Shown: positions 10,262 to 32,444, numbered from the stretch's first letter. The stretch is DNA of 64,000 bases from Sminthopsis crassicaudata (GCF_048593235.1 NC_133619.1:165678454-165742453); one strand, 5' to 3'. Numbers and translations are program-made. The notes: a model not told the origin generated them from the letters alone.

Positions 10262-11382
10262 AAATGAATGAACAATAAAATAGTAAATAAAGCATATAAA
10301 CATTGTAAGTGCATACCCATTTGTGGCAAAGGGATTGGCGTTATTCTGAGCACCCAGAATCTGGGGCTTGCTTCTTGCTCTGTTCTTCAGCAGTATGAAT
10401 TTAGAATTAAGAGTGCTAACTTTTCAGGAAGACTATGAATCTGAGAGCCTTTTATTTAAACCAAGAAAACTCTGGCTACATTGTTAATCCTTCTTACCAT
10501 AAAAAGGAGAAGTCATGTTTTTTTTCCTTTGGTGACTAATCTTCCAGCACCTAATTGGGAAGGGGAGGCTGTTAGAAGAATAGGAGAAGAAACCTGAGGA
10601 AAATAAAAGAGAAGGAAAAAACTTCCAAGTACAAAAGGAGGAAGAGCAAAATTTGGAATGCTAAATCGCAGTAGGAATATCTAAACAACCAAGCAGATAA
10701 GGAAGCAAAGATATAAAGAAAGAAAAGGAAGAAGCCTTTTCTTGGTTGAAAGTCTAGGCAGATGGGTAGGGAAAGTCTATTGCTCTGAGTGAGAGGGATC
10801 TACTGGAGGATCATAGCAGACTCAAAGATCTTGCAGGAAATAAGAAAATATAAGAGAGGTACAGGTAGAAAGGTGTTGTGAAGGATTGCAATAAATTAGT
10901 CCTCAATTGAGTAGGAAATTGAGCCAGACGTTTTGCCAAATATGCTTTCATTTTTTCTCTTGTACAAGTTTCTGTACCTCTTCTCAGAGCTATCCCATTA
11001 TGGAATACAAGCTAGAACATGGGTGATACCGTCACCATGTGTCTGTGTTAAAGTCCCATTTTTAAAGCCAATTAAACACAAGTTGCAATGTTTTGAAATT
11101 TTGAAGAGTAAAATCACTGTGGTCTAAAGTGCCTAGGTGTGAACAGCATTGTGTATCTGTAATTTCATTGGAGTATTTTTAAAAGGGGACCAATGGTGAC
11201 AACACAGCCCCAGGGAAGACAGTTGAAGCACTATGCAAAGTGGGAGTTCTCACCTTCTGAGCAGTAAATAAAAGAACCTGGATGAGGCAAACAATGAAAA
11301 ATAAATGATAGGAACTCACTTCTCACTTCTTTGTGGCAAGAACCAAAAAGAGAACGCAATCTTTTTTCTCAGTTGAATATCT

Positions 11383-12286
11383 TTTTTTTTTTTTTTAGTT
11401 AAAATTTTTTTATTATAGCTTTTTATATACAAAACATATGCATGGGTAGTTTTTCAACATTGACCCTTGCAAAATTCTTTGTTTTAACTTTTCCCCTCCT
11501 TCCCTCCACCCTCTCCCCTGGATAGCAGGTAGTCCCATACATCTTAAATATGTTAAATTATATGTTTTGTTTTATAATATTATCCCTTGTATTCATTTTT
11601 CCAAATTATCCCCCCCTCCCTCCACTCCCACCCCTAGATGACAGGCAATCCCATACATATTACATGTGTTACAATATAACCTAGATACAATATATGTGTG
11701 TAAATACCATTTTCTTGTTGCACATTAAGTATTAGATTCTGAAGGTATAAGTAACCTGGGTAGAGAGACAGTAGTGCTAACAATTTACATTCACTTCCCA
11801 GTGTTTCTTCTCTGGGTGTTGTTATTTCTGCCCATCATTGATCACCTGGAAGTGAGTTGGATCTTCTCTATGTTGAAGATATCCACTTCCATCAGAATAC
11901 ATCTTCATACAGCATTAAAGTGTACAGCGATGTTCTGGTTCTGTTCATTTCACTCAGCATCAGTTGATGTCAGTCTCTCCAAACCTCTCTATATTCCTCC
12001 TGCTGGTCATTTCTTACAGAGCAATAATATTCCATAACCTTCATATACCATAATTTACCCAACCATTCTCCAATTGATGGGCATCCATTTGTCTTCCAGT
12101 TTCTAGTTACAACAAAAAGAGCTGCCACAAACATTTTGGCACATACAGGTCCCTTTCTGCTCTTTAGTATTTCTTTGGGATATAATTCCAATAGCAGTAA
12201 TGCTGGGTCAAAGGGTATGCACAATTTGATAACTCTTTGGGCATAGTTCCAAATTGCTCTCCAGAATGGCTGGATTCTTTCACATG
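11383..12286 (-). mobile_element. 5'-truncated L1 with two different 3' ends (unit copy 1)
   Basis: ORF2 C-terminal motif on minus strand; TSD AGTTGAATATCT at 11371-11382 and 12287-12298. Confidence 0.9.
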
Positions 12287-12841
12287 AGTTGAATATCTAA
12301 AAAGAAAGGAATCAGAAATAATGTCCTCCTAAAAAATCTTTTATAAATATAAATGTGTCTTAATCTGATGATTGAGTCATAATTATAAAATGAGGCAAAA
12401 AATGTGAAATAAGGGGGTTGATATAACAAAGGTTGATACTTGTTTTCTTCATGAAAGCCATGGGTGGGAAGCAATTTCTGAAAAAAAAGATTTTGTTTGG
12501 GGTGGGGGAGGAAGGATGGTGTGGGGGGAGGGTGTGGGTGTTGTGGTTGGGGGGGGGGGATTTTTCGTTGCCATGTTTCCATCTCAGCACATCAGAGAGG
12601 TGATGTGTTGAGGCTTACAAATGAGAATGTCATTGCTAAGTGACCCAATAAGGAGATGTCTCCAAATTCAAGGAGGGAGGGAAGGAGTTTTCTTCTCAAG
12701 AGTTGCTGACTCTGAAGGGTGGGATTAGAAGGAAGGTGAGAACTCAGCCCTCAAGCAGAGAGTGGAAATCCTCTCAAAAGACAAGAGTTCTCACCTTGTT
12801 GGGGGTGGAGTTAAGAGAAGGGCTAAGCAGAGGAAGAGAGA

Positions 12842-12848
12842 TATAAAA
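12842..12848 (+). promoter_or_regulatory. candidate TATA box of the array TRIM gene (also 16831, 20819, 24807, 28794)
   Basis: TATAAAAG consensus ~105 bp upstream of the relic ancestral start and ~330 bp upstream of the first in-frame ATG; not verified by transcript data. Confidence 0.55.
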
Positions 12849-12949
12849 GGCTCAACCAGCTCAGTGCCAAGGTCTTTTGCTGCCAGAGCACAAGGGCTGG
12901 AGCTAGCTCTCTCCCTACCTGAAAAGGAAGGAATCAGAGCTTTAGGAAC

Positions 12950-13174
12950 ATACATGCAAGAGTGTCATTAAAAACCTGCAGCTAGGTCTCACTTCCTTGC
13001 ATCTGCCTGAACTTCCTCATTGACTGGGTGACTGAGAGTACAGAGTGTGTCTTCTCCAGGGCAGTGAGGGAGTCACTGAAACCTCAACCTGTGCAGAGGG
13101 CAGGGGAGTCATTCATCAGACAGGCTGACTTGCTGCTGAGCAGGAACCTGCATTCTCAGTGCACCACTGGCAAG
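12950..13174 (+). pseudogene. relic RING-coding segment in the 5' leader (repeated in every unit)
   Basis: Frame-hopping translation gives IKNLQLGLTC / ICLNFLIDWVT / TEC / LLQGSEGVTETSTCAE(G or C)RGVI / DLLLSRNL; the CxHxxC core is absent. Confidence 0.8.
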
Positions 13175-14365
13175 ATGCTCCAACCTCACCTGCTGCAGAA
13201 AGAGCTGGGCCTCAGCACCTGTGATCAACATGGAGAATGTGCGATGTTCTTCTGTGAGGAAGACCAGAGAGCCCTCTGTGATTCCTGCTTATCAGCCCCA
13301 GAGCACAAGGACCACCAAGTCCTTCCCTTGGAGACAGCAGCTGACAAGTGCAAGAACACGCTCCTGGAGATGTGCAGGATCTTACACACCAAAGAAGAGA
13401 AACTTCAAATTGCACTGGGCACACTGAGAAGAAGAGAGGCACAGGTCACAGAGCGTTCCAACACTTTGAAACAGTCAACTTTTTCTGAATTTTGGAAAAT
13501 TCAACAGTTCTTGAGGAATGAAAAATATGAATACCAAAAAAGATTGGTTAAGGTATCCAGAAGCAACCTGCTCCAACTAGAAGAGTATAAGAACAAGTTG
13601 TTCCAAGGAAAACAAAAGCTGCAACAAATGATGATAGAAGTGGAGGAGAATTTGGACAAGATGCCCTTGGAAATGATCCAGGCTGTGCCAGGCACTTTGA
13701 AAAAAAATGAAGAATTTGCACTCCAATGGCCAGTGTTTCCTCTCATTACCTGGCCTTTCTGCCCCATTACAGGCATGGCAGAATTTCTCATGAGTTTCCA
13801 CAGGGATATAACTCTTGATCCTGAATCAGCCCATCCTCATCTCATCCTGTCTGAAGATTTGAAGAGCGTCCAGTATGGAAGCATTCGTCAAGACCTGCCT
13901 GACAACAAAGAGAGATTTGATTCTGTTCTCGGGGTTTTGGGAGCCCAGAAATTCACCTCAGGCAAACACTACTGGGAAGTAGAGGTGGGAGACAAGACAG
14001 AGTGGGTATTGGGCATCTGTAAAGATTCAGTCAGGAGAAAAGGGAAACTCTCATTTGAGGAGATAATGACCATTGCAGCATTCAGAGCTGGAAATGCTTT
14101 CTTCTTCTGTACTTCAGACAAGAAATTTCAATTGGCCTGGCCTCTGCACAAAGTGGGCATTTTTCTTGATTGGGAAAACCAACAATTAGCATTTTATGAT
14201 GTCACACACAGATCCCTTGTCCACAGGCAATCAAACATCGATTTGGAAGGGCCTCTTCGCCCTTATTTCTCTCCTTGCCGTCCCAAGGAAAGAAGCACCC
14301 CTGGTTCACTCATCATTTGCCCCAAGAGTCCACAGGAGAGGCCTGCCACAGGGCCTAAATACTAA
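13175..14365 (+). CDS. TRIM type B copy 1: RING-less B-box2/coiled-coil/PRY-SPRY protein, 396 aa, intronless
   Basis: First in-frame ATG (AAGATGC) at 13175; B-box2 C-x2-H-x7-C-x2-D-x4-C-x2-C-x5-H-x2-H; ITLDPESAHPHLILSEDL; FTSGKHYWEVEVG; PLRPYFSP. Confidence 0.9.
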   Translation: MLQPHLLQKELGLSTCDQHGECAMFFCEEDQRALCDSCLSAPEHKDHQVLPLETAADKCKNTLLEMCRILHTKEEKLQIALGTLRRREAQVTERSNTLKQSTFSEFWKIQQFLRNEKYEYQKRLVKVSRSNLLQLEEYKNKLFQGKQKLQQMMIEVEENLDKMPLEMIQAVPGTLKKNEEFALQWPVFPLITWPFCPITGMAEFLMSFHRDITLDPESAHPHLILSEDLKSVQYGSIRQDLPDNKERFDSVLGVLGAQKFTSGKHYWEVEVGDKTEWVLGICKDSVRRKGKLSFEEIMTIAAFRAGNAFFFCTSDKKFQLAWPLHKVGIFLDWENQQLAFYDVTHRSLVHRQSNIDLEGPLRPYFSPCRPKERSTPGSLIICPKSPQERPATGPKY

Positions 14366-14444
14366 GGGTGGCCCTTTATGAAAAGTGAATGAGTGTAACA
14401 CTGCCAGTGACACTCACTTTCTTTGTATTCCTGTTGAAATGATG

Positions 14445-14450
14445 AATAAA
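14445..14450 (+). terminator. polyadenylation signal AATAAA of the array gene (also 18434, 22422, 26410, 30397)
   Basis: AATAAA 80 nt after the stop; the equivalent site is kept in type A copies (3739, 33121). Confidence 0.6.
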
Positions 14451-15374
14451 GTGTGATGATTTAAACCCAGAAACTCTGTCTATTTTGTTAATCCTTCTTT
14501 CCATAAAAAGGACAGCTCATTTTTTCTTCCCTTTGGTGGCTGATCTTCCAGTACCTAATTGGGAAGGGGAGGCTGTTGGAAGAATAGGAGAAAAGAAAGG
14601 AGAAGGAAAAAACTTCCAAGTACAAAAGGAGGAAGAGCAAAATTTGGAATGCTAAATCGCAGTAGGAATATCTAAACAACCAAGCAGATAAGGAAGCAAA
14701 GATATAAAGAAAGAAAAGGAAGAAGCCTTTTCTTGGTTGAAAGTCTAGGCAGATGGGTAGGGAAAGTCTATTGCTCTGAGTGAGAGGGATCTACTGGAGG
14801 ATCATAGCAGACTCAAAGATCTTGCAGGAAATAAGAAAATATAAGAGAGGTACAGGTAGAAAGGTGTTGTGAAGAATTGCAATAAATTAGTCCTCAATTG
14901 AGTAGGAAATTGAAGCCAGACGTTTTGCCAAATATGCTTTCATTTTTTCTCTTGTACAAGTTTCTGTACCTCTTCTCAGAGCTATCCCATTATGGAATAC
15001 AAGCTAGAACATGGGTGATACTGTCACCATGTGTCTATGTTAAAGTCCCATTTTTCAAGCCAATTAAACACAAGTTGCAATATTTTGAAAATTTGAAGAG
15101 TAAAATCACTGTGGTCTAAAGTGCCTAGGTGTGAACAGCATTGTGTATCTGTAATTTCATTGGAGTATTTTTAAAAGGGGACCAATGGTGACAACACAGC
15201 CCCAGGGAAGACAGTTGAAGCACTATGCAAAGTGGGAGTTCTCACCTTCTGAGCAGTAAATAAAAGAACCTGGATGAGGCAAACAATGAAAAATAAATAA
15301 TAGGAACTCACTTCTCACTTCTTTGTGGCAAGAACCAAAAGGAGAAAGCAATCTTTTTTCTCAGTTGAATATCT

Positions 15375-16274
15375 TTTTTTTTTAATTAAAATATTTTATA
15401 TTATAGCTTTTCATATACAAAACATATGCATGGGTAGTTTTTCAACATTGACCCTTGCAAAATTCTTTGTTTTAACTTTTCCCCTCCTTCCCTCCACCCT
15501 CTCCCCTAGATAGCAGGTAGTCCCATACATCTTAAATATGTTAAATTATATGTTTTGTTTTATAATATTATCCCTTGTATTCATTTTTCCAAATTATCCC
15601 CCCCTCCCTCCACTCCCACCCCTAGATGACAGGCAATCCCATACATATTACATGTGTTACAATATAACCTAGATACAATATATGTGTGTAAATACCATTT
15701 TCTTGTTGCACATTAAGTATTAGATTCTGAAGGTATAAGTAACCTGGGTAGAGAGACAGTAGTGCTAACAATTTACATTCACTTCCCAGTGTTTCTTCTC
15801 TGGGTGTTGTTATTTCTGCCCATCATTGATCACCTGGAAGTGAGTTGGATCTTCTCTATGTTGAAGATTTCCACTTCCATCAGAATACATCTTCATACAG
15901 CATTGAAGTGTACAGTGATCTTCTGGTTCTGTTCATTTCACTCAGCATCAGTTGATGTCAGTCTCTCCAAACCTCTCTATATTCCTCCTGCTGGTCATTT
16001 CTTACAGAGCAATAATATTCCATAACCTTCATATACCATAATTTACCCAACCATTCTCCAACTAATGGGCATCCATTTGTCTTCCAGTTTCTAGCTACAA
16101 CAAAAAGAGCTGCCACAAACATTTTGGCACATACAGGTCCCTTTCCGCTCTTTAGTATTTCTTTGGGATATAATTCCAATAGCAGTAATGCTGGGTCAAA
16201 GGGTATGCACAATTTGATAACTCTTTGGGCATAGTTCCATATTGCTCTCCAGAATGGCTGGATTCTTTCACATG
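15375..16274 (-). mobile_element. 5'-truncated L1 (unit copy 2)
   Basis: Same element; TSD at 15363-15374 and 16275-16286. Confidence 0.9.
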
Positions 16275-17163
16275 AGTTGAATATCTAAAAAGAAAGGAAT
16301 CAGAAATAATGTCCTCCTAAAAAATCTTTTATAAATATAAATGTGTCTTAATCTGATGATTGAGTCATAATTATAAAATGAGGCGAAAAATGTGAAATAA
16401 GGGGGTTGATATAGCAAAGGTTGATACTTGTTTTCTTCATGAAAGCCATGGGTGGGAAGCAATTTCTGAAAAAAAAGATTTTGTTTGGGGTGGGGGAGGA
16501 AGGGTGGTGTGGGGGGAGGGTGTGGGTGTTGTGGTTGGGGGGGGGGGGATTTTTCGTTGCCATGTTTCCATCTCAGCACATCAGAGAGGTGATGTGTTGA
16601 GGCTTACAAATGAGAATGTTATTGCTAAGTGACCCAATAAGGAGATGTCTCCAAGTTCAAGGAGGGAGGGAAGGAGTTTTCTTCTCAAGAGTTGCTGACT
16701 CTGAAGGGTGGGATTAGAAGGAAGGTGAGAACTCAGCCCTCAAGCAGAGAGTGGAAATCCTCTCAAAAGACAAGAGTTCTCACCTTGTTGGGGGTGGAGT
16801 TAAGAGAAGGGCTAAGCAGAGGAAGAGAGATATAAAAGGCTCAACCAGCTCAGTGCCAAGGTCTTTTGCTGCCAGAGCACAAGGGCTGGAGCTAGCTCTC
16901 TCCCTACCTGAAAAGGAAGGAATCAGAGCTTTAGGAACATACATGCAAGAGTGTCATTAAAAACCTGCAGCTAGGTCTCACTTGCTTGCATCTGCCTGAA
17001 CTTCCTCATTGACTGGGTGACTGAGAGTACAGAGTGTGTCTTCTCCAGGGCAGTGAGGGAGTCACTGAAACCTCAACCTGTGCAGAGGGCAGGGGAGTCA
17101 TTCATCAGACAGGCTGACTTGCTGCTGAGCAGGAACCTGCATTCTCAGTGCACCACTGGCAAG

Positions 17164-18354
17164 ATGCTCCAACCTCACCTGCTGCAGAAAGAGCTGGGCC
17201 TCAGCACCTGTGATCAACATGGAGAACGAGCGATGTTCTTCTGTGAGGAAGACCAGAGAGCCCTCTGTGATTCCTGCTTATCAGCCCCAGAGCACAAGGA
17301 CCACCAAGTCCTTCCCTTGGAGACAGCAGCTGACAAGTGCAAGAACACGCTCCTGGAGATGTGCAGGATCTTACACACCAAAGAAGAGAAACTTCAAATT
17401 GCACTGGGCACACTGAGAAGAAGAGAGGCACAGGTCACAGAGCGTTCCAACACTTTGAAACAGTCAACTTTTTCTGAATTTTGGAAAATTCAACAGTTCT
17501 TGAGGAATGAAAAATATGAATACCAAAAAAGATTGGTTAAGGTATCCAGAAGCAACCTGCTCCAACTAGAAGAGTATAAGAACAAGTTGTTCCAAGGAAA
17601 ACAAAAGCTGCAACAAATGATGATAGAAGTGGAGGAGAATTTGGACAAGATGCCCTTGGAAATGATCCAGGCTGTGCCAGGCACTTTGAAAAAAAATGAA
17701 GAATTTGCACTCCAATGGCCAGTGTTTCCTCTCATTACCTGGCCTTTCTGCCCCATTACAGGCATGGCAGAATTTCTCATGAGTTTCCACAGGGATATAA
17801 CTCTTGATCCTGAATCAGCCCATCCTCATCTCATCCTGTCTGAAGATTTGAAGAGCGTCCAGTATGGAAGCATTCGTCAAGACCTGCCTGACAACAAAGA
17901 GAGATTTGATTCTGTTCTCGGGGTTTTGGGAGCCCAGAAATTCACCTCAGGCAAACACTACTGGGAAGTAGAGGTGGGAGACAAGACAGAGTGGGTATTG
18001 GGCATCTGTAAAGATTCAGTCAGGAGAAAAGGGAAACTCTCATTTGAGGAGATAATGACCATTGCAGCATTCAGAGCTGGAAATGCTTTCTTCTTCTGTA
18101 CTTCAGACAAGAAATTTCAATTGGCCTGGCCTCTGCACAAAGTGGGCATTTTTCTTGATTGGGAAAACCAACAATTAGCATTTTATGATGTCACACACAG
18201 ATCCCTTGTCCACAGGCAATCAAACATCGATTTGGAAGGGACTCTTCGCCCTTATTTCTCTCCTTGCCGTCCCAAGGAAAGAAGCACCCCTGGTTCACTC
18301 ATCATTTGCCCCAAGAGTCCACAGGAGAGGCCTGCCACAGGGCCTAAATACTAA
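17164..18354 (+). CDS. TRIM type B copy 2, 396 aa
   Basis: As copy 1; differs by C->R in the B-box and P->T in SPRY. Confidence 0.9.
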   Translation: MLQPHLLQKELGLSTCDQHGERAMFFCEEDQRALCDSCLSAPEHKDHQVLPLETAADKCKNTLLEMCRILHTKEEKLQIALGTLRRREAQVTERSNTLKQSTFSEFWKIQQFLRNEKYEYQKRLVKVSRSNLLQLEEYKNKLFQGKQKLQQMMIEVEENLDKMPLEMIQAVPGTLKKNEEFALQWPVFPLITWPFCPITGMAEFLMSFHRDITLDPESAHPHLILSEDLKSVQYGSIRQDLPDNKERFDSVLGVLGAQKFTSGKHYWEVEVGDKTEWVLGICKDSVRRKGKLSFEEIMTIAAFRAGNAFFFCTSDKKFQLAWPLHKVGIFLDWENQQLAFYDVTHRSLVHRQSNIDLEGTLRPYFSPCRPKERSTPGSLIICPKSPQERPATGPKY

Positions 18355-19362
18355 GGGTGGCCCTTTATGAAAAGTGAATGAGTGTAACACTGCCAGTGAC
18401 ACTCACTTTCTTTGTATTCCTGTTGAAATGATGAATAAAGTGTGATGATTTAAACCCAGAAACTCTGTCTATTTTGTTAATCCTTCTTTCCATAAAAAGG
18501 ACAGCTCATTTTTTCTTCCCTTTGGGGCTGATCTTCCAGTACCTAATTGGGAAGGGGAGGCTGTTGGAAGAATAGGAGAAAAGAAAGGAGAAGGAAAAAA
18601 CTTCCAAGTACAAAAGGAGGAAGAGCAAAATTTGGAATGCTAAATCGCAGTAGGAATATCTAAACAACCAAGCAGATAAGGAAGCAAAGATATAAAGAAA
18701 GAAAAGGAAGAAGCCTTTTCTTGGTTGAAAGTCTAGGCAGATGGGTAGGGAAAGTCTATTGCTCTGAGTGAGAGGGATCTACTGGAGGATCATAGCAGAC
18801 TCAAAGATCTTGCAGGAAATAAGAAAATATAAGAGAGGTACAGGTAGAAAGGTGCTGTGAAGAATTGCAATAAATTAGTCCTCAATTGAGTAGGAAATTG
18901 AAGCCAGACGTTTTGCCAAATATGCTTTCATTTTTTCTCTTGTACAAGTTTCTGTACCTCTTCTCAGAGCTATCCCATTATGGAATACAAGCTAGAACAT
19001 GGGTGATACTGTCACCATGTGTCTATGTTAAAGTCCCATTTTTCAAGCCAATTAAACACAAGTTGCAATATTTTGAAAATTTGAAGAGTAAAATCACTGT
19101 GGTCTAAAGTGCCTAGGTGTGAACAGCATTGTGTATCTGTAATTTCATTGGAGTATTTTTAAAAGGGGACCAATGGTGACAACACAGCCCCAGGGAAGAC
19201 AGTTGAAGCACTATGCAAAGTGGGAGTTCTCACCTTCTGAGCAGTAAATAAAAGAACCTGGATGAGGCAAACAATGAAAAATAAATAATAGGAACTCACT
19301 TCTCACTTCTTTGTGGCAAGAACCAAAAGGAGAAAGCAATCTTTTTTCTCAGTTGAATATCT

Positions 19363-21151: not shown

Positions 21152-22342
21152 ATGCTCCAACCTCACCTGCTGCAGAAAGAGCTGGGCCTCAGCACCTGTG
21201 ATCAACATGGAGAACGAGCGATGTTCTTCTGTGAGGAAGACCAGAGAGCCCTCTGTGATTCCTGCTTATCAGCCCCAGAGCACAAGGACCACCAAGTCCT
21301 TCCCTTGGAGACAGCAGCTGACAAGTGCAAGAACACGCTCCTGGAGATGTGCAGGATCTTACACACCAAAGAAGAGAAACTTCAAATTGCACTGGGCACA
21401 CTGAGAAGAAGAGAGGCACAGGTCACAGAGCGTTCCAACACTTTGAAACAGTCAACTTTTTCTGAATTTTGGAAAATTCAACAGTTCTTGAGGAATGAAA
21501 AATATGAATACCAAAAAAGATTGGTTAAGGTATCCAGAAGCAACCTGCTCCAACTAGAAGAGTATAAGAACAAGTTGTTCCAAGGAAAACAAAAGCTGCA
21601 ACAAATGATGATAGAAGTGGAGGAGAATTTGGACAAGATGCCCTTGGAAATGATCCAGGCTGTGCCAGGCACTTTGAAAAAAAATGAAGAATTTGCACTC
21701 CAATGGCCAGTGTTTCCTCTCATTACCTGGCCTTTCTGCCCCATTACAGGCATGGCAGAATTTCTCATGAGTTTCCACAGGGATATAACTCTTGATCCTG
21801 AATCAGCCCATCCTCATCTCATCCTGTCTGAAGATTTGAAGAGCGTCCAGTATGGAAGCATTCGTCAAGACCTGCCTGACAACAAAGAGAGATTTGATTC
21901 TGTTCTCGGGGTTTTGGGAGCCCAGAAATTCACCTCAGGCAAACACTACTGGGAAGTAGAGGTGGGAGACAAGACAGAGTGGGTATTGGGCATCTGTAAA
22001 GATTCAGTCAGGAGAAAAGGGAAACTCTCATTTGAGGAGATAATGACCATTGCAGCATTCAGAGCTGGAAATGCTTTCTTCTTCTGTACTTCAGACAAGA
22101 AATTTCAATTGGCCTGGCCTCTGCACAAAGTGGGCATTTTTCTTGATTGGGAAAACCAACAATTAGCATTTTATGATGTCACACACAGATCCCTTGTCCA
22201 CAGGCAATCAAACATCGATTTGGAAGGGACTCTTCGCCCTTATTTCTCTCCTTGCCGTCCCAAGGAAAGAAGCACCCCTGGTTCACTCATCATTTGCCCC
22301 AAGAGTCCACAGGAGAGGCCTGCCACAGGGCCTAAATACTAA
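21152..22342 (+). CDS. TRIM type B copy 3, 396 aa
   Basis: Protein identical to copy 2 in the ORF track. Confidence 0.88.
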   Translation: MLQPHLLQKELGLSTCDQHGERAMFFCEEDQRALCDSCLSAPEHKDHQVLPLETAADKCKNTLLEMCRILHTKEEKLQIALGTLRRREAQVTERSNTLKQSTFSEFWKIQQFLRNEKYEYQKRLVKVSRSNLLQLEEYKNKLFQGKQKLQQMMIEVEENLDKMPLEMIQAVPGTLKKNEEFALQWPVFPLITWPFCPITGMAEFLMSFHRDITLDPESAHPHLILSEDLKSVQYGSIRQDLPDNKERFDSVLGVLGAQKFTSGKHYWEVEVGDKTEWVLGICKDSVRRKGKLSFEEIMTIAAFRAGNAFFFCTSDKKFQLAWPLHKVGIFLDWENQQLAFYDVTHRSLVHRQSNIDLEGTLRPYFSPCRPKERSTPGSLIICPKSPQERPATGPKY

Positions 22343-23350
22343 GGGTGGCCCTTTATGAAAAGTGAATGAGTGTAACACTGCCAGTGACACTCACTTTCTT
22401 TGTATTCCTGTTGAAATGATGAATAAAGTGTGATGATTTAAACCCAGAAACTCTGTCTATTTTGTTAATCCTTCTTTCCATAAAAAGGACAGCTCATTTT
22501 TTCTTCCCTTTGGGGCTGATCTTCCAGTACCTAATTGGGAAGGGGAGGCTGTTGGAAGAATAGGAGAAAAGAAAGGAGAAGGAAAAAACTTCCAAGTACA
22601 AAAGGAGGAAGAGCAAAATTTGGAATGCTAAATCGCAGTAGGAATATCTAAACAACCAAGCAGATAAGGAAGCAAAGATATAAAGAAAGAAAAGGAAGAA
22701 GCCTTTTCTTGGTTGAAAGTCTAGGCAGATGGGTAGGGAAAGTCTATTGCTCTGAGTGAGAGGGATCTACTGGAGGATCATAGCAGACTCAAAGATCTTG
22801 CAGGAAATAAGAAAATATAAGAGAGGTACAGGTAGAAAGGTGCTGTGAAGAATTGCAATAAATTAGTCCTCAATTGAGTAGGAAATTGAAGCCAGACGTT
22901 TTGCCAAATATGCTTTCATTTTTTCTCTTGTACAAGTTTCTGTACCTCTTCTCAGAGCTATCCCATTATGGAATACAAGCTAGAACATGGGTGATACTGT
23001 CACCATGTGTCTATGTTAAAGTCCCATTTTTCAAGCCAATTAAACACAAGTTGCAATATTTTGAAAATTTGAAGAGTAAAATCACTGTGGTCTAAAGTGC
23101 CTAGGTGTGAACAGCATTGTGTATCTGTAATTTCATTGGAGTATTTTTAAAAGGGGACCAATGGTGACAACACAGCCCCAGGGAAGACAGTTGAAGCACT
23201 ATGCAAAGTGGGAGTTCTCACCTTCTGAGCAGTAAATAAAAGAACCTGGATGAGGCAAACAATGAAAAATAAATAATAGGAACTCACTTCTCACTTCTTT
23301 GTGGCAAGAACCAAAAGGAGAAAGCAATCTTTTTTCTCAGTTGAATATCT

Positions 23351-24250
23351 TTTTTTTTTAATTAAAATATTTTAAATTATAGCTTTTCATATACAAAACA
23401 TATGCATGGGTAGTTTTTCAACATTGACCCTTGCAAAATTCTTTGTTTTAACTTTTCCCCTCCTTCCCTCCACCCTCTCCCCTAGATAGCAGGTAGTCCC
23501 ATAAATCTTAAATATGTTAAATTATATGTTTTGTTTTATAATATTATCCCTTGTATTCATTTTTCCAAATTATCCCCCCCTCCCTCCACTCCCACCCCTA
23601 GATGACAGGCAATCCCATACATATTACATGTGTTACAATATAACCTAGATACAATATATGTGTGTAAATACCATTTTCTTGTTGCACATTAAGTATTAGA
23701 TTCTGAAGGTATAAGTAACCTGGGTAGAGAGACAGTAGTGCTAACAATTTACATTCACTTCCCAGTGTTTCTTCTCTGGGTGTAGTTATTTCTGCCCATC
23801 ATTGATCACCTGGAAGTGAGTTGGATCTTCTCTATGTTGAAGATTTCCACTTCCATCAGAATACATCTTCATACAGCATTAAAGTGTACAGTGATCTTCT
23901 GGTTCTGTTCATTTCACTCAGCATCAGTTGATGTAAGTCTCTCCAAGCCTCTCTGTATTCCTCCTGCTGGTCATTTCTTACAGAGCAATAATATTCCATA
24001 ACCTTCATATACCATAATTTACCCAACCATTCTCCAATTGATGGGCATCCATTTGTCTTCCAGTTTCTAGCTACAACAAAAAGAGCTGCCACAAACATTT
24101 TGGCACATACAGGTCCCTTTCTGCTCTTTAGTATTTCTTTGGGATATAATCCCAATAGCAGTAATGCTGGGTCAAAGGGTATGCACAATTTGATAACTCT
24201 TTGGGCATAGTTCCAAATTGCTCTCCAGAATGGCTGGATTCTTTCACATC
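23351..24250 (-). mobile_element. 5'-truncated L1 (unit copy 4)
   Basis: Same element; TSD 23339-23350 and 24251-24262. Confidence 0.9.
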
Positions 24251-25139
24251 AGTTGAATATCTAAAAAGAAAGGAATCAGAAATAATGTCCTCCTAAAAAA
24301 TCTTTTATAAATATAAATGTGTCTTAATCTGATGATTGAGTCATAATTATAAAATGAGGCAAAAAATGTGAAATAAGGGGGTTGATATAGCAAAGGTTGA
24401 TACTTGTTTTCTTCATGAAAGCCATGGGTGGGAAGCAATTTCTGAAAAAAAAGATTTTGTTTGGGGTGGGGGAGGAAGGGTGGTGTGGGGGGAGGGTGTG
24501 GGTGTTGTGGTTGGGGGGGGCGGGATTTTTCGTTGCCATGTTTCCATCTCAGCACATCAGAGAGGTGATGTGTTGAGGCTTACAAATGAGAATGTTATTG
24601 CTAAGTGACCCAATAAGGAGATGTCTCCAAGTTCAAGGAGGGAGGGAAGGAGTTTTCTTCTCAAGAGTTGCTGACTCTGAAGGGTGGGATTAGAAGGAAG
24701 GTGAGAACTCAGCCCTCAAGCAGAGAGTGGAAATCCTCTCAAAAGACAAGAGTTCTCACCTTGTTGGGGGTGGAGTTAAGAGAAGGGCTAAGCAGAGGAA
24801 GAGAGATATAAAAGGCTCAACCAGCTCAGTGCCAAGGTCTTTTGCTGCCAGAGCACAAGGGCTGGAGCTAGCTCTCTCCCTACCTGAAAAGGAAGGAATC
24901 AGAGCTTTAGGAACATACATGCAAGAGTGTCATTAAAAACCTGCAGCTAGGTCTCACTTGCTTGCATCTGCCTGAACTTCCTCATTGACTGGGTGACTGA
25001 GAGTACAGAGTGTGTCTTCTCCAGGGCAGTGAGGGAGTCACTGAAACCTCAACCTGTGCAGAGGGCAGGGGAGTCATTCATCAGACAGGCTGACTTGCTG
25101 CTGAGCAGGAACCTGCATTCTCAGTGCACCACTGGCAAG

Positions 25140-26330
25140 ATGCTCCAACCTCACCTGCTGCAGAAAGAGCTGGGCCTCAGCACCTGTGATCAACATGGAG
25201 AACGAGCGATGTTCTTCTGTGAGGAAGACCAGAGAGCCCTCTGTGATTCCTGCTTATCAGCCCCAGAGCACAAGGACCACCAAGTCCTTCCCTTGGAGAC
25301 AGCAGCTGACAAGTGCAAGAACACGCTCCTGGAGATGTGCAGGATCTTACACACCAAAGAAGAGAAACTTCAAATTGCACTGGGCACACTGAGAAGAAGA
25401 GAGGCACAGGTCACAGAGCGTTCCAACACTTTGAAACAGTCAGCTTTTTCTGAATTTTGGAAAATTCAACAGTTCTTGAGGAATGAAAAATATGAATACC
25501 AAAAAAGATTGGTTAAGGTATCCAGAAGCAACCTGCTCCAACTAGAAGAGTATAAGAACAAGTTGTTCCAAGGAAAACAAAAGCTGCAACAAATGATGAT
25601 AGAAGTGGAGGAGAATTTGGACAAGATGCCCTTGGAAATGATCCAGGCTGTGCCAGGCACTTTGAAAAAAAAGGAAGAATTTTCACTCCAAAGGCCATTG
25701 TTTCCTTTCATTACCTGGCCTTTCTGCCCCATTACAGGCATGGCAGAATTTCTCATGAGTTTCCACAGGGATATAACTCTTGATCCTGAATCAGCCCATC
25801 CTCATCTCATCCTGTCTGAAGATTTGAAGAGCGTCCAGTATGGAAGCATTCGTCAAGACCTGCCTGACAACAAAGAGAGATTTGATTCTGTTCTCGGGGT
25901 TTTGGGAGCCCAGAAATTCACCTCAGGCAAACACTACTGGGAAGTAGAGGTGGGAGACAAGACAGAGTGGGTATTGGGCATCTGTAAAGATTCAGTCAGG
26001 AGAAAAGGGAAACTCTCATTTGAGGAGATAATGACCATTGCAGCATTCAGAGCTGGAAATGCTTTCTTCTTCTGTACTTCAGACAAGAAATTTCAATTGG
26101 CCTGGCCTCTGCACAAAGTGGGCATTTTTCTTGATTGGGAAAAGCAACAATTAGCATTTTATGATGTCACACACAGATCCCTTGTCCACAGGCAATCAAA
26201 CATCGATTTGGAAGGGCCTCTTCGCCCTTATTTCTCTCCTTGCCGTCCCAAGGAAAGAAGCACCCCTGGTTCACTCATCATTTGCCCCAAGAGTCCACAG
26301 GAGAGGCCTGCCACAGGTCCTAAATACTAA
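25140..26330 (+). CDS. TRIM type B copy 4, 396 aa
   Basis: Intact ORF; 8 residues differ from copy 3. Confidence 0.9.
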   Translation: MLQPHLLQKELGLSTCDQHGERAMFFCEEDQRALCDSCLSAPEHKDHQVLPLETAADKCKNTLLEMCRILHTKEEKLQIALGTLRRREAQVTERSNTLKQSAFSEFWKIQQFLRNEKYEYQKRLVKVSRSNLLQLEEYKNKLFQGKQKLQQMMIEVEENLDKMPLEMIQAVPGTLKKKEEFSLQRPLFPFITWPFCPITGMAEFLMSFHRDITLDPESAHPHLILSEDLKSVQYGSIRQDLPDNKERFDSVLGVLGAQKFTSGKHYWEVEVGDKTEWVLGICKDSVRRKGKLSFEEIMTIAAFRAGNAFFFCTSDKKFQLAWPLHKVGIFLDWEKQQLAFYDVTHRSLVHRQSNIDLEGPLRPYFSPCRPKERSTPGSLIICPKSPQERPATGPKY

Positions 26331-27339
26331 GGGTGGCCCTTTATGAAAAGGGAATGAGTGTAACACTGCCAGTGACACTCACTTTCTTTGTATTCCTGTT
26401 GAAATGATGAATAAAGTGTGATGATTTAAACCAAGAAACTCTGTCTATTTTGTTAATCCTTCTTTCCATAAAAAGGACAGCTCATTTTTTCTTCCCTTTG
26501 GTGGCTGATCTTCCAGTACCTAATTGGGAAGTGGAGGCTGTTGGAAGAATAGGAGAAAAGAAAGGAGAAGGAAAAAACTTCCAAGTACAAAAGGAGAAAG
26601 GGCAAAATTTGGAATGCTAAATCGCAGTAGGAATATCTAAACAACCAAGCAGATAAGGAAGCAAAGATATAAAGAAAGAAAAGGAAGAAGCCTTTTCTTG
26701 GTTGAAAGTCTAGGCAGATGGGTAGGGAAAGTCTATTGCTCTGAGTGAGAGGGATCTACTGGAGGATCATAGCAGACTCAAAGATCTTGCAGGAAATAAG
26801 AAAATATAAGAGAGGTACAGGTAGAAAGGTGTTGTGAAGAATTGCAATAAATTAGTCCTCAATTGAGTAGGAAATTGAAGCCAGACGTTTTGCCAAATAT
26901 GCTTTCATTTTTTCTCTTGTACAAGTTTCTGTACCTCTTCTCAGAGCTATCCCATTATGGAATACAAGCTAGAACATGGGTGATACTGTCACCATGTGTC
27001 TATGTTAAAGTCCCATTTTTCAAGCCAATTAAACACAAGTTGCAATATTTTGAAAATTTGAAGAGTAAAATCACTGTGGTCTAAAGTGCCTAGGTGTGAA
27101 CAGCATTGTGTATCTGTAATTTCATTGGAGTATTTTTAAAAGGGGACCAATGGTGACAACACAGCCCCAGGGAAGACAGTTGAAGCACTATGCAAAGTGG
27201 GAGTTCTCACCTTCTGAGCAGTAAATAAAAGAACCTGGATGAGGCAAACAATGAAAAATAAATAATAGGAACTCACTTCTCACTTCTTTGTGGCAAGAAC
27301 CAAAAGGAGAAAGCAATCTTTTTTCTCAGTTGAATATCT

Positions 27340-28239
27340 TTTTTTTTTAATTAAAATATTTTATATTATAGCTTTTCATATACAAAACATATGCATGGGT
27401 AGTTTTTCAACATTGACCCTTGCAAAATTCTTTGTTTTAACTTTTCCCCTCCTTCCCTCCACCCTCTCCCCTAGATAGCAGGTAGTCCCATACATCTTAA
27501 ATATGTTAAATTATATGTTTTGTTTTATAATATTATCCCTTGTATTCATTTTTCCAAATTATCCCCCCCTCCCTCCACTCCCACCCCTAGATGACAGGCA
27601 ATCCCATACATTTTACATGTGTTACAATATAACCTAGATACAATATATGTGTGTAAATACCATTTTCTTGTTGCACATTAAGTATTAGATTCTGAAGGTA
27701 TAAGTAACCTGGGTAGAGAGACAGTAGTGCTAACAATTTACATTCACTTCCCAGTGTTTCTTCTCTGGGTGTTGTTATTTCTGCCCATCATTGATCACCT
27801 GGAAGTGAGTTGGATCTTCTTTATGTTGAAGATTTCCACTTCCATCAGAATACATCTTCATACAGCATTGAAGTGTACAGCGATCTTCTGGTTCTGTTCA
27901 TTTCACTCAGCATCAGTTGATGTCAGTCTCTCCAAGCCTCTCTGTATTCCTCCTGCTGGTCATTTCTTACAGAGCAATAATATTCCATAACCTTCATATA
28001 CCATAATTTACCCAACCATTCTCCAATTGATGGGCATCCATTCGTCTTCCAGTTTCTAGCTACAACAAAATGAGCTGCCACAAACATTTTGGCACATACA
28101 GGTCCCTTTCCACTCTTTAGTATTTCTTTGGGATATAATCCCAATAGCAGTAATGCTGGGTCAAAGGGTATGCACAATTTGATAACTCTTTGGGCATAGT
28201 TCCAAATTGCTCTCCAGAATGTCTGGATTCTTTCACATG
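27340..28239 (-). mobile_element. 5'-truncated L1 (unit copy 5)
   Basis: Same element; TSD 27328-27339 and 28240-28251. Confidence 0.9.
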
Positions 28240-29126
28240 AGTTGAATATCTAAAAAGAAAGGAATCAGAAATAATGTCCTCCTAAAAAATCTTTTATAAA
28301 TATAAATGTGTCTTAATCTGATGATTGAGTCATAATTATAAAATGAGGCAAAAAATGTGAAATAAGGGGGTTGATATAGCAAAGGTTGATACTTGTTTTC
28401 TTCATGAAAGCCATGGGTGGGAAGCAATTTCTGAAAAAAAGATTTTGTTTGGGGTGGGGGAGGAAGGGTGGTGTGGGGGGAGGGTGTGGGTGTTGTGGTT
28501 GGGGGGGGGGGATTTTTCGTTGCCATGTTTCCATCTCAGCACATCAGAGAGGTGATGTGTTGAGGCTTACAAATGAGAATGTTATTGCTAAGTGACCCAA
28601 TAAGGAGATGTCTCCAAGTTCAAGGAGGGAGGGAAGGAGTTTTCTTCTCAAGAGTTGCTGACTCTGAAGGGTGGGGTTAGAAGGAAGGTGAGAACTCAGC
28701 CCTCAAGCAGAGAGTGGAAATCCTCTCAAAAGACAAGAGTTCTCACCTTGTTGGGGGTGGAGTTAAGAGAAGAGTTAAGCAGAGGAAGAGAGATATAAAA
28801 GGCTCAACCAGCTCAGTGCCAAGGTCTTTTGCTGCCAGAGCACAAGGGCTGGAGCTAGCTCTCTCCCTACCTGAAAAGGAAGGAATCAGAGCTTTAGGAA
28901 CATACATGCAAGAGTGTCATTAAAAACCTGCAGCTAGGTCTCACTTGCTTGCATCTGCCTGAACTTCCTCATTGACTGGGTGACTGAGAGTACAGAGTGT
29001 GTCTTCTCCAGGGCAGTGAGGGAGTCACTGAAACCTCAACCTGTGCAGAGTGCAGGGGAGTCATTCATCAGACAGGCTGACTTGCTGCTGAGCAGGAACC
29101 TGCATTCTCAGTGCACCACTGGCAAG

Positions 29127-30317
29127 ATGCTCCAACCTCACCTGCTGCAGAAAGAGCTGGGCCTCAGCACCTGTGATCAACATGGAGAACGAACGATGTT
29201 CTTCTGTGAGGAAGACCACAGAGCCCTCTGTGATTCCTGCTTATCAGCCCCAGAGCACAAGGACCACCAAGTCCTTCCCTTGGAGACAGCAGCTGACAAG
29301 TGCAAGAACACGCTCCTGGAGATGTGCAGCATCTTACACATCAAAGAAGAGAAACTTCAAATTGCACTGGGCACACTGAGAAGAAGAGAGGCACAGGTCA
29401 CAGAGCATTCCAACACTTTGAAACAGTCAGTTTTTTCTGAATTTTGGAAAATTCAACAGTTCTTGAGGAATGAAAAATATGAATACCAAAAAAGATTGGT
29501 TAAGGTATCCACAAGTAACCTGCTCCAACTAGAAGAGTATAAGAACAAGTTGTTCCAAGGAAAACAAAAGCTGCAACAAATGATGATAGAAGTGGAGGAG
29601 AATTTGGACAAGATGCCCTTGGAAATGATCCAGGCTGTGCCAGGCACTTTGAAAAAAAAGGAAGAATTTTCACTCCAAAGGCCATTGTTTCCTTTCATTA
29701 CCTGGCCTTTCTGCCCCATTACAGGCATGGCAGAATTTCTCATGAGTTTCCACAGGGATATAACTCTTGATCCTGAATCAGCCCATCCTCATCTCATCCT
29801 GTCTGAAGATTTGAAGCGCGTCCAGTATGGAAGCAAACGTCAAGACCTGCCTGACAACAAAGAGAGATTTGATTCTGTTCTCGGGGTTTTGGGAGCCCAG
29901 AAATTCACCTCAGGCAAACACTACTGGGAAGTAGAGGTGGGAGACAAGACAGAGTGGGTATTGGGCATCTGTAAAGATTCAGTCAGGAGAAAAGGGAAAC
30001 TCTCATTTGAGGAGATAATGACCATTGCAGCATTCAGAGCTGGAAATGCTTTCTTCTTCTGTACTTCAGACAAGAAATTTCAATTGGCCTGGCCTCTGCA
30101 CAAAGTGGGCATTTTTCTTAATTGGGAAAAGCAACAATTAGCATTTTATGATGTCACACACAGATCCCTTGTCCACATGAAATCAAACATCGATTTGGAA
30201 GGGCCTCTTCGCCCTTATTTCTCTCCTTGCCGTCCCAAGGAAAGAAGCACCCCTGGTTCACTCATCATTTGCCCCAAGAGTCCACAGGAGAGGCCTGCCA
30301 CAGGTCCTAAATACTAA
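29127..30317 (+). CDS. TRIM type B copy 5, 396 aa (most diverged)
   Basis: Intact ORF; 12 residues differ from copy 4. Confidence 0.9.
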   Translation: MLQPHLLQKELGLSTCDQHGERTMFFCEEDHRALCDSCLSAPEHKDHQVLPLETAADKCKNTLLEMCSILHIKEEKLQIALGTLRRREAQVTEHSNTLKQSVFSEFWKIQQFLRNEKYEYQKRLVKVSTSNLLQLEEYKNKLFQGKQKLQQMMIEVEENLDKMPLEMIQAVPGTLKKKEEFSLQRPLFPFITWPFCPITGMAEFLMSFHRDITLDPESAHPHLILSEDLKRVQYGSKRQDLPDNKERFDSVLGVLGAQKFTSGKHYWEVEVGDKTEWVLGICKDSVRRKGKLSFEEIMTIAAFRAGNAFFFCTSDKKFQLAWPLHKVGIFLNWEKQQLAFYDVTHRSLVHMKSNIDLEGPLRPYFSPCRPKERSTPGSLIICPKSPQERPATGPKY

Positions 30318-31007
30318 GGGTGGCCCTTTATGAAAAGTGAATGAGTGTAACACTGCCAGTGACACTCACTTTCTTTGTATTCCTGTTGAAATGATGAATA
30401 AAGTGTGATGATTTAAACCCAGAAACTCTGTCTATTTTGTTAATCGTTCTTTCCATAAAAAGGACAGGTCATTTTTTCCATTTTGGTGGCTGATCTTCCA
30501 GTACCTAATTTGAAAGGGGAGGCTGTTAGAAGAATAAGAGAAAAGCCCTGAGCAAAATAAAAGAGAAGGAAAAACTTCCAAGTACAAAAGGAGGAAGAGC
30601 AAAATTTGGAATGCTAAATCGCAGTAGGAATATCTAAACAACCAAGCAGATAAGAAGCAAAGAAATAAAGAAAGAAAAGGAAGAAACCTTTTCTTGGTTG
30701 AAAGACTAGGCAGATGTGTAGGGAAAGTCTATTACTCTGAGTGAGAGAGATCTACTGGAGGATCATAGCAGACTCAAAGATCTTGCAGGAAATAAGAAAA
30801 TATAAGAGAGATACAGGTAGAAAGGTGTTGTGAAGAATTGCAATAAATTAGTCCTCAATTGAGTAGGAAATTGAAGCCAGACGTTTTGCCAAATATGCTT
30901 TCATTTTTTCTTTCTGTTTTTCTAGGCTTCTCTTGTACAAGTTTCTGTACCTCTTTTCAGAGCTATCCCATTATGGAATACAAGCTAGATAGAACATTAG
31001 TGATACT

Positions 31008-32233: not shown

Positions 32234-32444
32234 GTTCTCACATTTGGAGTAGTAAATAAAAGAACCTTCACGGGGCAAACAATGAAAAATAATAATAATA
32301 ATAATAGTAACTCACTTCTCAGATCTTTGTGACCAAACTTCCGGAGATAGGGAGAATCTAACAAGATTGAAAAACAAGGAAGAGCTCCTACTTAACAAAC
32401 CAGAGCTTTCTTACATTTCCTGTCCTACCTGCCCTGTCACAGGC

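Follow-up and report, generated by a model that had tools for sequence, protein, structure and literature searches.

The analysed window, a stretch of 64,000 nucleotides from the dunnart Sminthopsis crassicaudata, carries a tandem array that we read, at a probability of roughly 70%, as a young five-copy expansion of single-exon, RING-less genes of the TRIML1-like family, whose products have a putative role as non-catalytic binders acting through their SPRY domains. The array spans ~20 kb of CM109183.1 (~165.69-165.71 Mb) and lies ~28 kb from LIG4. What is new here is the very recent burst to five copies; the genes themselves belong to a known, annotated and fast-evolving marsupial gene family.

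Array layout and the shared L1 insertion

Based on self-BLAST and MAFFT alignments, exactly five head-to-tail units with a period of ~3,988 bp were found between window positions 10455 and 30989, as the earlier note had described. The units are 98.1-100% identical to each other (pairwise substitutions 0.28-1.93%), and, by way of older homologous spacer that is ~90% identical, similarity reaches leftwards to position 10455 and rightwards to 30989. With a period limit of 500 bp, the five-unit array and its 3,988-bp period go undetected by TRF. The unit boundaries given below follow an arbitrary phase.

10455..30989, plus strand: whole tandem array region, five ~3,988-bp units with older homologous spacer at both edges
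~10605 to ~30545, plus strand: segment putatively duplicated in the founding event, within the array region
10497..14499, plus strand: unit 1, its left 115 bp being original upstream spacer
14500..18488, plus strand: unit 2 (self-BLAST, MAFFT)
18489..22476, plus strand: unit 3, with the CDS of unit 2 and non-coding sequence identical to that of unit 4
22477..26464, plus strand: unit 4 (self-BLAST, MAFFT)
26465..30451, plus strand: unit 5, with the most diverged CDS (~12 private derived changes)
30452..30989, plus strand: post-array spacer, ~90% identical to the unit start

A minus-oriented L1 insert of ~900 bp, whose poly(A) tail lies on the left, is shared by all five units and flanked in each of them by the 11-bp target-site duplication AGTTGAATATC. 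The uninterrupted empty site is seen in units from dunnart, Antechinus and Sarcophilus that are paralogous or orthologous to those of the array. The identical target-site duplication and the empty sites in relatives confirm that a single L1 insertion is common to the whole array.

11382..12286, minus strand: truncated L1 of unit 1 (5' part missing, 3' end retained), with AGTTGAATATC on either side
15374..16274, minus strand: same L1 insertion in unit 2
19362..20262, minus strand: same L1 insertion in unit 3
23350..24250, minus strand: same L1 insertion in unit 4
27339..28239, minus strand: same L1 insertion in unit 5

Coding sequences, the lost RING and relatives

Each unit encodes one ATG-to-stop ORF of 396 amino acids, with no stops and no indels in any of the five copies, and with the architecture B-box2, long coiled coil, L2 linker and PRY-SPRY. 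The intact ORFs proposed beforehand are therefore upheld by the reading frames and by the Pfam domains (zf-B_box 14-52, PRY 212-260, SPRY 264-367), while the same scan gave no Pfam match for a RING.

13175..14365, plus strand: ORF 1, 396 aa, B-box2/coiled coil/PRY-SPRY, with R22C private to this copy
17164..18354, plus strand: ORF 2, 396 aa
21152..22342, plus strand: ORF 3, 396 aa, identical to ORF 2
25140..26330, plus strand: ORF 4, 396 aa
29127..30317, plus strand: ORF 5, 396 aa, identical to P0001

ORF 1 and ORF 5 were scanned against Pfam; there the B-box2 matched PF00643 at residues 14-52 with E = 1.7e-9 and 7.1e-10, and its ligands C16, H19, C27, D30, C35, C38, H44 and H47 are identical across all copies. 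The PRY-SPRY region was recognised by PF13765 (E = 8e-22) and PF00622 (E = 2e-14), and the top matches among solved structures were the PRY-SPRY domains of TRIM11 and TRIM21 (E = 4e-44 to 1e-38). Among the traits of class IV TRIM proteins, the B-box2 and the C-terminal PRY-SPRY are hence present, and the long coiled coil forming an antiparallel dimer is seen in prediction only. An AlphaFold2 model (mean pLDDT 63, moderate confidence) shows the B-box, one helix (residues 52-159) and a beta sandwich. For residues 1-215 a homodimer was predicted with an ipSAE of 0.55 (best control 0.00), at least 79% contact agreement over three runs and a partner pLDDT of at least 76; the predicted contacts are antiparallel, e.g. 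156 with 63 and 84 with 139. The pass mark applied was reached by 21/30 proteins solved as homodimers and by 0/23 solved as single chains, and the pass may stem from solved TRIM coiled coils that the model had memorised.

The N-terminal C3HC4 RING of class IV TRIM proteins is absent according to both the Pfam scan and the collinear region upstream of the present ATG, where a leader of ~300 nt houses its decayed remains. In this fossil RING most zinc-ligand cysteines and the histidine are gone, one degraded C-x-C remnant persists, and a stop interrupts the frame. In unit 2, a 5-codon uORF now begins at 16943 with what was the ancestral ATG. Further upstream, each unit carries the TATA motif GAGATATAAAAGG (at 12842, 16831, 20819, 24807 and 28794), whose conservation extends to dunnart paralogues, Antechinus and Sarcophilus, and each unit has an AATAAA (outside unit 2 at 14445, 22422, 26410 and 30397); the earlier note had reported both signals, and both were located in five of five units.

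16831..16836, plus strand: TATA box of unit 2, ~333 bp 5' of the ATG
16943..17163, plus strand: fossil RING of unit 2, located in its 5' leader and collinear with the relatives' RING (starts in the other units: 12954, 20931, 24919 and 28906)
18434..18439, plus strand: AATAAA of unit 2

A phylogeny including TRIML1, as suggested at the outset, placed the array in a marsupial TRIML1-like clade. In this 74-row maximum-likelihood tree, which was built without any TRIML2 sequence, the array falls within a dasyurid RING-less clade (14 rows, 100% SH-aLRT), with dunnart and devil present in both of its subclades; this clade is nested in a marsupial clade (58 rows, 99% support) that is sister to eutherian TRIML1. 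To judge from this tree, the array genes are members of the marsupial TRIML1-like family. At the protein level, they share 74% identity with the 389-aa RING-less genes that Antechinus and Sarcophilus carry, and 57-63% with RING-bearing members of 466-473 aa. All five genes are RING-less as claimed, but the loss is not specific to the array: the grouping of 14 dasyurid relatives in one RING-less clade and the same fossil RING in Antechinus copies indicate that it is old and predates the array. Across the tree, RING state changed at least eight times by parsimony, a count in which losses and gains are not separable.

The description as intronless holds in a similar way. A single tblastn HSP in one frame, running collinearly over residues 12-466 of the RING-bearing relatives, supports a single coding exon in the array genes, but gene span equals CDS length in dasyurid RING-less genes and in RING-bearing possum, opossum and devil genes alike. 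The single-exon state is thus a family trait shared with RING-bearing members; the basal marsupial relatives P0080 and P0062 have introns, with spans of 6.3 and 7.7 kb. The earlier note had raised the prospect that the array might already be annotated and old in related species, and this applies in part, to the type of array but not to the five-copy burst. Antechinus and Sarcophilus have L1-free tandem arrays of the same unit, and so has the dunnart itself at a distance of 1.45 Mb. Four distinct 396-aa proteins from the array contig match the array ORFs at NCBI and fall into a public 90%-identity cluster (NCBI, UniRef; representative P0001), whose neighbours are named 'putative TRIML1'. The array is nested inside the marsupial TRIML1 family, with which it shares the single coding exon, and differs from it in the missing RING and in an L1-tagged burst that, by its sequence, is specific to the dunnart lineage.

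Alternative explanations and amplification history

It could be argued that the copies arose neutrally from instability of the tandem locus, are of no use (or none any longer) and have open frames merely through youth. We consider this unlikely, although several observations would fit. Within the array, 22 of the 25 variable coding sites change an amino acid; counted as mutational events, 23 of ~27 do so versus 79% expected by chance (P = 0.21-0.32), and the excess of amino-acid changes among the array copies is statistically neutral. In line with this, the within-array dN/dS of 1.3-2.2 falls short of significance, and the density of variable sites is alike in CDS (2.1%) and non-coding DNA (~1.9%). 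Birth-and-death turnover is also evident, since many neighbouring family members are pseudogenes: genes A and C in the window flanks and copies in L001, L002 and L003 are truncated or carry stops. Against this, the frame of the parent lineage has stayed open through 111, 153 and 159 observed substitutions, which happened in 0.8%, 0.14% and 0.12% of simulations, respectively. Indels between lineages in the CDS are all multiples of three (3, 9, 6, 6), whereas each pairwise alignment of the upstream region has 6-7 indels, almost all of lengths that would break a frame. On these grounds, the frame of the lineage has been held open under selection (P ~0.001-0.008). Furthermore, the five coding sequences of 1,191 bp contain no indel versus ~8 non-coding indel events, the B-box ligands and the PRY core are unaltered in all copies, and the TATA region and the leader with its single uATG are conserved across three species.

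The dN/dS varies by domain: it is 0.3-0.4 for the B-box, 0.15-0.36 for the PRY, 0.5-0.6 for the coiled coil and ~0.75 for the SPRY, and reaches 1.6-1.9 in the linker (176-211). Variability maxima across the family lie at residues 111-150, 181-200 and 291-360.

An assembly artefact, by which at least one unit would be a mis-expanded repeat or stem from haplotypes placed in tandem, is clearly improbable in our view. The suspicion concerns chiefly the stretch from 16546 to 25442, where 4,909 bp are identical at a 3,988-bp shift, and near-identical 4-kb repeats are hard to count. However, there are four distinct unit types with private substitutions and indels, and their mosaic pattern fits unequal exchange. 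DNA-like runs of three studies, covering at least three samples, also contain the array sequence, similar arrays occur in the same assembly and in assemblies of two other genera, and an artefact would take away one unit at most.

16546..25442, plus strand: perfectly periodic stretch, 4,909 bp identical at a 3,988-bp shift
14527..14596, plus strand: crossover zone of an interior junction, post-array spacer on its left side and pre-array spacer on its right

The junctions bear on a further alternative, namely an old array homogenised by gene conversion (concerted evolution) with no recent amplification. The tandem architecture of the unit is indeed older than the dasyurid radiation, the non-coding part of unit 1 is the oldest and most diverged (1.0-1.5% from other units) while its CDS is close to those of units 2 and 3, and a cluster of five substitutions lies within 35 nt. 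We nevertheless regard this scenario as very improbable: one and the same chimera of the two flanking spacers (left and right) recurs at each of the four interior junctions, with the same 13-bp deletion at the switch, all units share one L1 with one target-site duplication, and flank copies A and C, only 80% identical to the array units, escaped homogenisation. Conversion alone would have to spread the 900-bp insert and the junction to every unit, whereas a single founding duplication accounts for all of these features. The shared chimera thus points to one unequal crossover as the founding event, with the post-array spacer as its right-hand partner. A recent processed retrogene origin was rejected, as the copies do not each show their own poly(A) and target-site duplication with promoter and spacer missing, but contain promoter, spacer and L1 joined by one recombinant spacer junction. 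For the family as a whole, an ancient retrocopy origin is possible.

Taken together, the shared L1, the common chimeric junction and the near-identity of the units bear out the proposal of a young amplification at the DNA level that followed the L1 insertion. The sequence records the following course of events: an older array of ~3.1-kb L1-free RING-less units predates the dasyurid radiation; in the dunnart lineage, a 5'-truncated L1 inserted upstream of one promoter; the first duplicate arose by one unequal crossover between the ~90%-identical spacers flanking that gene; and later unequal exchanges among the units, which form a mosaic, raised the number to five, with the final exchange leaving no differences. 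The footprint of the newest duplication shows 0 differences across the periodic stretch. With its L1 tag, founding junction, unequal exchanges and zero-difference duplicate, the array offers a clean, datable record of the birth of a gene array.

Proposed role and known counterparts

The TRIML1-like family is commonly tied to innate immunity and reproduction, and antiparallel coiled-coil dimers are typical of TRIM proteins. The array proteins would dimerise in the same way and engage targets through the hypervariable SPRY surface and the L2 linker. Because the RING is absent, they are not expected to ubiquitinate by themselves; we therefore propose a non-catalytic role, probably that of a dimeric, SPRY-mediated binder. 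For the same reason, the name 'E3 ligase' is misleading for these genes. Such a protein might serve as a sequestering or decoy factor, a substrate adaptor or a dominant-negative partner of RING-bearing relatives, probably in a fast-moving conflict in a germline/embryonic or an antiviral/anti-retroelement setting; from the sequence, decoy, adaptor, antiviral or reproductive roles are plausible. Gain of copies could raise dosage and give the copies room to diversify. ORF words were found in small RNA-like runs (57-119 million letters, the RNA label being a guess), in which ORF sequence is better represented than that of its flanks. If the genes are expressed, the dunnart would provide a laboratory marsupial for testing dosage and diversification of non-catalytic TRIM binders.

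Taken alone, the array is another lineage-specific TRIM expansion with genes annotated already. Previous work regarded RING-less TRIML genes as a eutherian invention and multiple marsupial TRIML1 genes as possible artefacts, marsupial TRIML1 being said to retain the RING (PMC6993854); the dasyurid data contradict both the eutherian-only view and the artefact view. Eutherian TRIML2, which is related to TRIML1 and lacks a RING, has a fast-evolving PRY-SPRY and is presumed to act independently of ligase activity (PMC6993854, PMC12007913). TRIML2 is a single gene without B-box2, whereas the dunnart genes form an array and have an intact B-box2. Orthology with TRIML2 was rejected on account of this B-box and the nesting of the array among marsupial genes in the tree without TRIML2, and the resemblance appears to be convergent domain loss.

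The primate TRIM43/48/49/51/64/77 clusters are young and copy-number-variable (PMC3228819), and 'group 2' SPRY TRIMs are fast-evolving (PMC2533329). In the primate clusters as in the dunnart array, class IV TRIM genes have undergone tandem or segmental amplification in particular lineages, turn over by birth and death, and evolve rapidly in the SPRY. However, the primate genes have introns and lie in large segmental duplications, while the dunnart unit is a compact 4 kb with one intronless gene and the RING gone. More broadly, and rather doubtfully, marsupials may have stripped an intronless TRIML1-derived gene of its RING time and again, giving compact, self-promoted tandem cassettes that grow and shrink within less than 1 million years; the dunnart array would then be copy-number-polymorphic and expressed in germline or early embryo, its products being non-catalytic binders engaged in an arms race against retroelements, viruses or reproductive partners, as an independent counterpart of eutherian TRIML2 and the primate TRIM43/48/49/64 clusters.

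TRIM14 and other RING-less B-box/coiled-coil/PRY-SPRY proteins act as adaptors, not ligases, and are single-copy and conserved. The dunnart genes share this domain set with them as distant kin. Macrosatellites such as D4Z4/DUX4 and RS447/USP17 consist of kb-sized head-to-tail units, each with an intronless ORF and its own promoter, that expand and contract through unequal exchange. This unit structure is matched by the dunnart array, albeit with only five copies, and the zero-difference duplicate suggests that exchange within the array is ongoing.

Structure, surroundings and annotation of the array

Comparison of one period with the whole window by self-BLAST recovered five full head-to-tail copies at 98.4–100% identity, together with older partial matches to the unit at both array edges and in the flanks, and aligning the five units with MAFFT gave substitutions of 0.28–1.93% between unit pairs. 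TRF did not detect the array, because the unit period exceeds its 500-bp limit.

Array units as delimited by self-BLAST
10497–14499, unit 1
14500–18488, unit 2
18489–22476, unit 3
22477–26464, unit 4
26465–30451, unit 5

Each of the five units carries a 396-aa ATG-to-stop ORF free of stops and indels, and the proteins from units 2 and 3 are identical. Pfam assigned a B-box to residues 14–52, PRY to 212–260 and SPRY to 264–367, with no RING match in the ORF; among solved structures, the closest relatives are found in TRIM11 and TRIM21 (PRY-SPRY domains). A TATA motif, surrounded by a promoter block that is kept across three genera, precedes each ATG by ~333 bp, and AATAAA lies ~80 bp past every stop codon. 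The earlier note had described five units with intact RING-less ORFs, TATA and AATAAA, and self-BLAST, MAFFT and Pfam bore out this description and its coordinates.

Features on either side of the array
2573–5037, flank copy A, truncated TRIML1-like; 323-aa ORF at 2661–3632 with coiled coil and PRY-SPRY, B-box absent
4439–4585, run of 147 N just downstream of flank gene A
7924–8644, L1 fragment
31023–31530 and 31742–32233, ~500-bp insertions splitting the post-array spacer, in opposite orientation, with 88% mutual identity
32367–34376, flank copy C, truncated TRIML1-like; 215-aa ORF at 32367–33014 with PRY-SPRY only
36806–36905, two perfect tandem copies of an AT-rich 50-bp unit
44844–48354, minus strand, L1 fragment
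45744–46463, minus strand, 239-aa L1 ORF
46489–48354, minus strand, 621-aa L1 ORF with a reverse-transcriptase domain
49863–50175, 54570–54934 and 63409–63988, L1 fragments
58066–60801, minus strand, LIG4, single-exon and intact (911 aa), with the full LIG4 domain set and both BRCTs

The two flank copies share only ~80% identity with the array gene but 93% with one another across ~2 kb that includes downstream DNA, and they suggest an older, larger duplication in which two gene types alternated. No further copies of the ~500-bp spacer insertions were found in the window.

An exact look-up placed ORF 5 at CM109183.1:165,707,580, so that the window corresponds to ~165.678–165.742 Mb. LIG4, ~28 kb beyond the array on its right side, offers a conserved anchor for synteny comparison with other marsupials. 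The array genes are already annotated: their products make up a cluster at 90% identity that comprises four distinct 396-aa proteins from NCBI and UniRef, as many as the different proteins from the five ORFs. The same chromosome bears two more young dunnart clusters, one of 6 and one of 8 distinct members, whose XP numbers are consecutive. Among the assembled run contigs in the protein index the full-length ORF was absent, the genome record being its sole carrier.

RING decay and the intronless state

RING-bearing marsupial relatives (466–473 aa) match every unit from residue 12 to the end in one tblastn segment and one frame, and the whole ancestral coding region is therefore intronless in the unit. 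The RING-collinear stretch, which sits upstream of the present ATG, has lost most zinc-ligand cysteines and the histidine, keeps only a degraded C-x-C remnant and is interrupted by an in-frame stop. The ancestral start codon (16943 in unit 2) now begins a 5-codon uORF and is the sole upstream ATG of the predicted leader. P0002, a dunnart paralogue, shows the same decayed RING motif, as do the Antechinus copies.

In a phylogeny of 74 rows with SH-aLRT support, 14/14 dasyurid relatives formed one RING-less clade (100% SH-aLRT), in which dunnart and devil genes are present in each of two RING-less subclades. P0002 and P0021, both dunnart paralogues, formed the sister group of the array, and Antechinus/Sarcophilus genes were in turn sister to all of these. 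The earlier note had proposed a lineage-specific RING-less expansion. Judged from clade membership and the placement of the array, the parent gene of the array did arise in the dunnart lineage, whereas the RING loss is older than the dasyurid radiation.

Parsimony required at least 8 changes of RING state across this tree. RING-less proteins (P0052, P0011/P0012, P0016/P0018, P0022, P0033/P0043, P0058, P0060, P0068/P0082 and P0077) are included in it, and such proteins are interspersed with RING-bearing ones in Dromiciops, possum, wombat, koala and Gracilinanus. P0052 is full length at 466 aa and yet has no RING match; some of the scattered cases may be gene-model artefacts.

CDS length equals gene span in the dasyurid RING-less genes and in RING-bearing possum, opossum and devil genes (P0015, P0028 and P0057 as inner-clade examples). 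P0080 and P0062 (Vombatus), which are TRIML1-like marsupial genes of more basal position, have spans of 6.3 and 7.7 kb, and a span of 6–8 kb implies introns in these basal genes. The intronless state is thus an old trait of the marsupial TRIML1-like family, and the pattern suggests that the whole single-exon expansion derives from one ancient intronless, possibly retroposed, copy.

A previous study held that all marsupial TRIML1 genes keep the RING and that multiple marsupial TRIML1 genes are possibly artefactual (PMC6993854); the dunnart array contradicts both statements. Tandem TRIM expansions confined to one lineage are a known kind, as are RING-less TRIMs, and the array is a marsupial parallel to the RING-less TRIML2.

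Coding constraint, predicted protein and possible function

The main rival to a functional reading treats the array copies as neutral by-products of locus instability. In all, 25 coding sites vary between the five copies, 22 of them with a change of amino acid, and dN/dS between copies is 1.3–2.2. Positive selection within the array was rejected, since the non-synonymous share (~23 of 27 inferred events vs 79% expected by chance) fits the neutral expectation (P = 0.21–0.32, not significant). An excess of coding over non-coding divergence in unit 5 (P = 0.003) was gone when the deepest non-coding divergence was used, because the units are mosaics, with coding parts identical in units 2 and 3 and non-coding parts identical in units 3 and 4. 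Variable-site density is alike in coding and non-coding parts, and the copies are too young for constraint to show. Five amino-acid changes fall within codons 178–190 of the L2 linker, three derived in units 1–3 and two in units 4–5. Their clustering gave P = 0.0003 for unit 3 vs unit 4 and P = 0.076 over all 25 sites, and no gene-conversion donor was found, neither variant occurring in any sampled paralogue or orthologue.

On a longer timescale, comparison with relatives provides good evidence of function. The frame has remained open despite 111 substitutions separating it from the dunnart paralogue, 153 from the Antechinus gene and 159 from the Sarcophilus gene, an outcome seen in only 0.8%, 0.14% and 0.12% of simulations, respectively. 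All coding indels are multiples of three; the upstream region shows 6–7 per pairwise alignment, of which almost none keeps the frame. dN/dS is 0.64–0.66 against other genera and 1.08 against the nearest dunnart paralogue, with domain values of 0.3–0.4 for the B-box, 0.15–0.36 for PRY, 0.5–0.6 for the coiled coil, 1.6–1.9 for the linker (176–211) and ~0.75 for SPRY. Within the family, variability is highest in the middle of the coiled coil, in the linker and at SPRY residues 291–360, and this combination of conserved scaffold and variable surface resembles fast-evolving class IV TRIMs (PMC2533329, PMC3228819).

An AlphaFold2 model of the ORF protein, built with 42 relatives, reached moderate confidence (mean pLDDT 63, with the linker and several SPRY loops <50) and comprises the B-box, one helix (52–159), short helices in L2 and a beta sandwich. 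For residues 1–215, a homodimer was predicted with an ipSAE of 0.55, compared to 0.00 for the best of three controls, with at least 79% contact agreement between runs and a partner pLDDT of at least 76. The pass mark used is reached by 21/30 proteins solved as homodimers and by 0/23 solved as single chains. With its antiparallel contacts (e.g. 156 with 63 and 84 with 139), the predicted homodimer is similar to solved TRIM dimers, and its pass may stem from the model's memory of these.

The structural and historical account of the array is well supported. Based on domain content and evolutionary pattern, we infer that the array protein is a RING-less, dimeric, SPRY-mediated binder, which would serve as a decoy, sequestering factor or adaptor in germline or immune conflict. 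Two opossum family members were reported to be testis- and ovary-restricted (PMC6993854); the array genes go unmentioned in papers on dunnart transcriptomes and embryos. Between 50 and 71% of sampled words occurred in DNA-like sequencing runs from at least three samples (three studies). Several very small runs, which at 57–119 million letters are too small for genome assemblies and whose RNA labels are guesses, contained ORF words more densely than flank words (shares of 0.34 vs 0.26 in run X13 and 0.64 vs 0.50 in X11, with the DNA-like X4 flat at 0.70–0.71). This enrichment is only a hint of expression.

Origin and age of the array

Related units at an Antechinus locus (L001), a Sarcophilus locus (L002) and a dunnart locus 1.45 Mb off (L003) form tandem arrays too, with a unit of ~3.1 kb that is 76–89% identical to that of the window. 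A ~900-bp insert present in every array unit is absent from the homologous units of all three loci, where the uninterrupted insertion site is retained. The insert begins with a T-run and is bounded on each side by AGTTGAATATC, its 11-bp target-site duplication; its minus strand codes for the C-terminal end of L1 ORF2, and it also matches the 3' end of the window L1 whose adjoining ORF has the reverse-transcriptase domain. The common insert, its duplication and the empty sites in relatives therefore place a single L1 insertion before amplification, as had been claimed earlier. This L1 piece is 75–92% identical to other L1 fragments of the window.

The four interior junctions are identical chimeras, which carry the states of the post-array spacer (30452 onward) up to ~unit position 96 and beyond it those of the spacer preceding unit 1, the switch lying in a brief mosaic stretch with a 13-bp deletion private to these junctions. 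Such junctions are the signature of one unequal crossover between ~90%-identical spacers flanking a single gene; the crossover generated the first duplicate, from which the other copies were derived. At a 3,988-bp shift, 4,909 bp are perfectly identical (16546–25442), so the newest duplication is without any accumulated change; if the assembler miscounted, no more than one unit would be lost. A recent retrogene origin of the copies is ruled out by the recombinant spacer junctions between units.

Between dunnart and Antechinus or Sarcophilus genes dS is ~0.2. With a split ~25–35 Myr ago assumed, the non-coding differences of 0.6–1.5% between units would date the older duplications to roughly 1–2 Myr and the last one to within ~0.1 Myr, both of which inter-unit conversion would turn into underestimates.

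The three related loci each hold at least three tandem units with a period of ~3.0–3.3 kb, in which intact 389-aa genes are mixed with stop-riddled copies. Two adjacent genes of the second dunnart locus are only 2 coding substitutions apart, and very young duplicates thus recur in the family.
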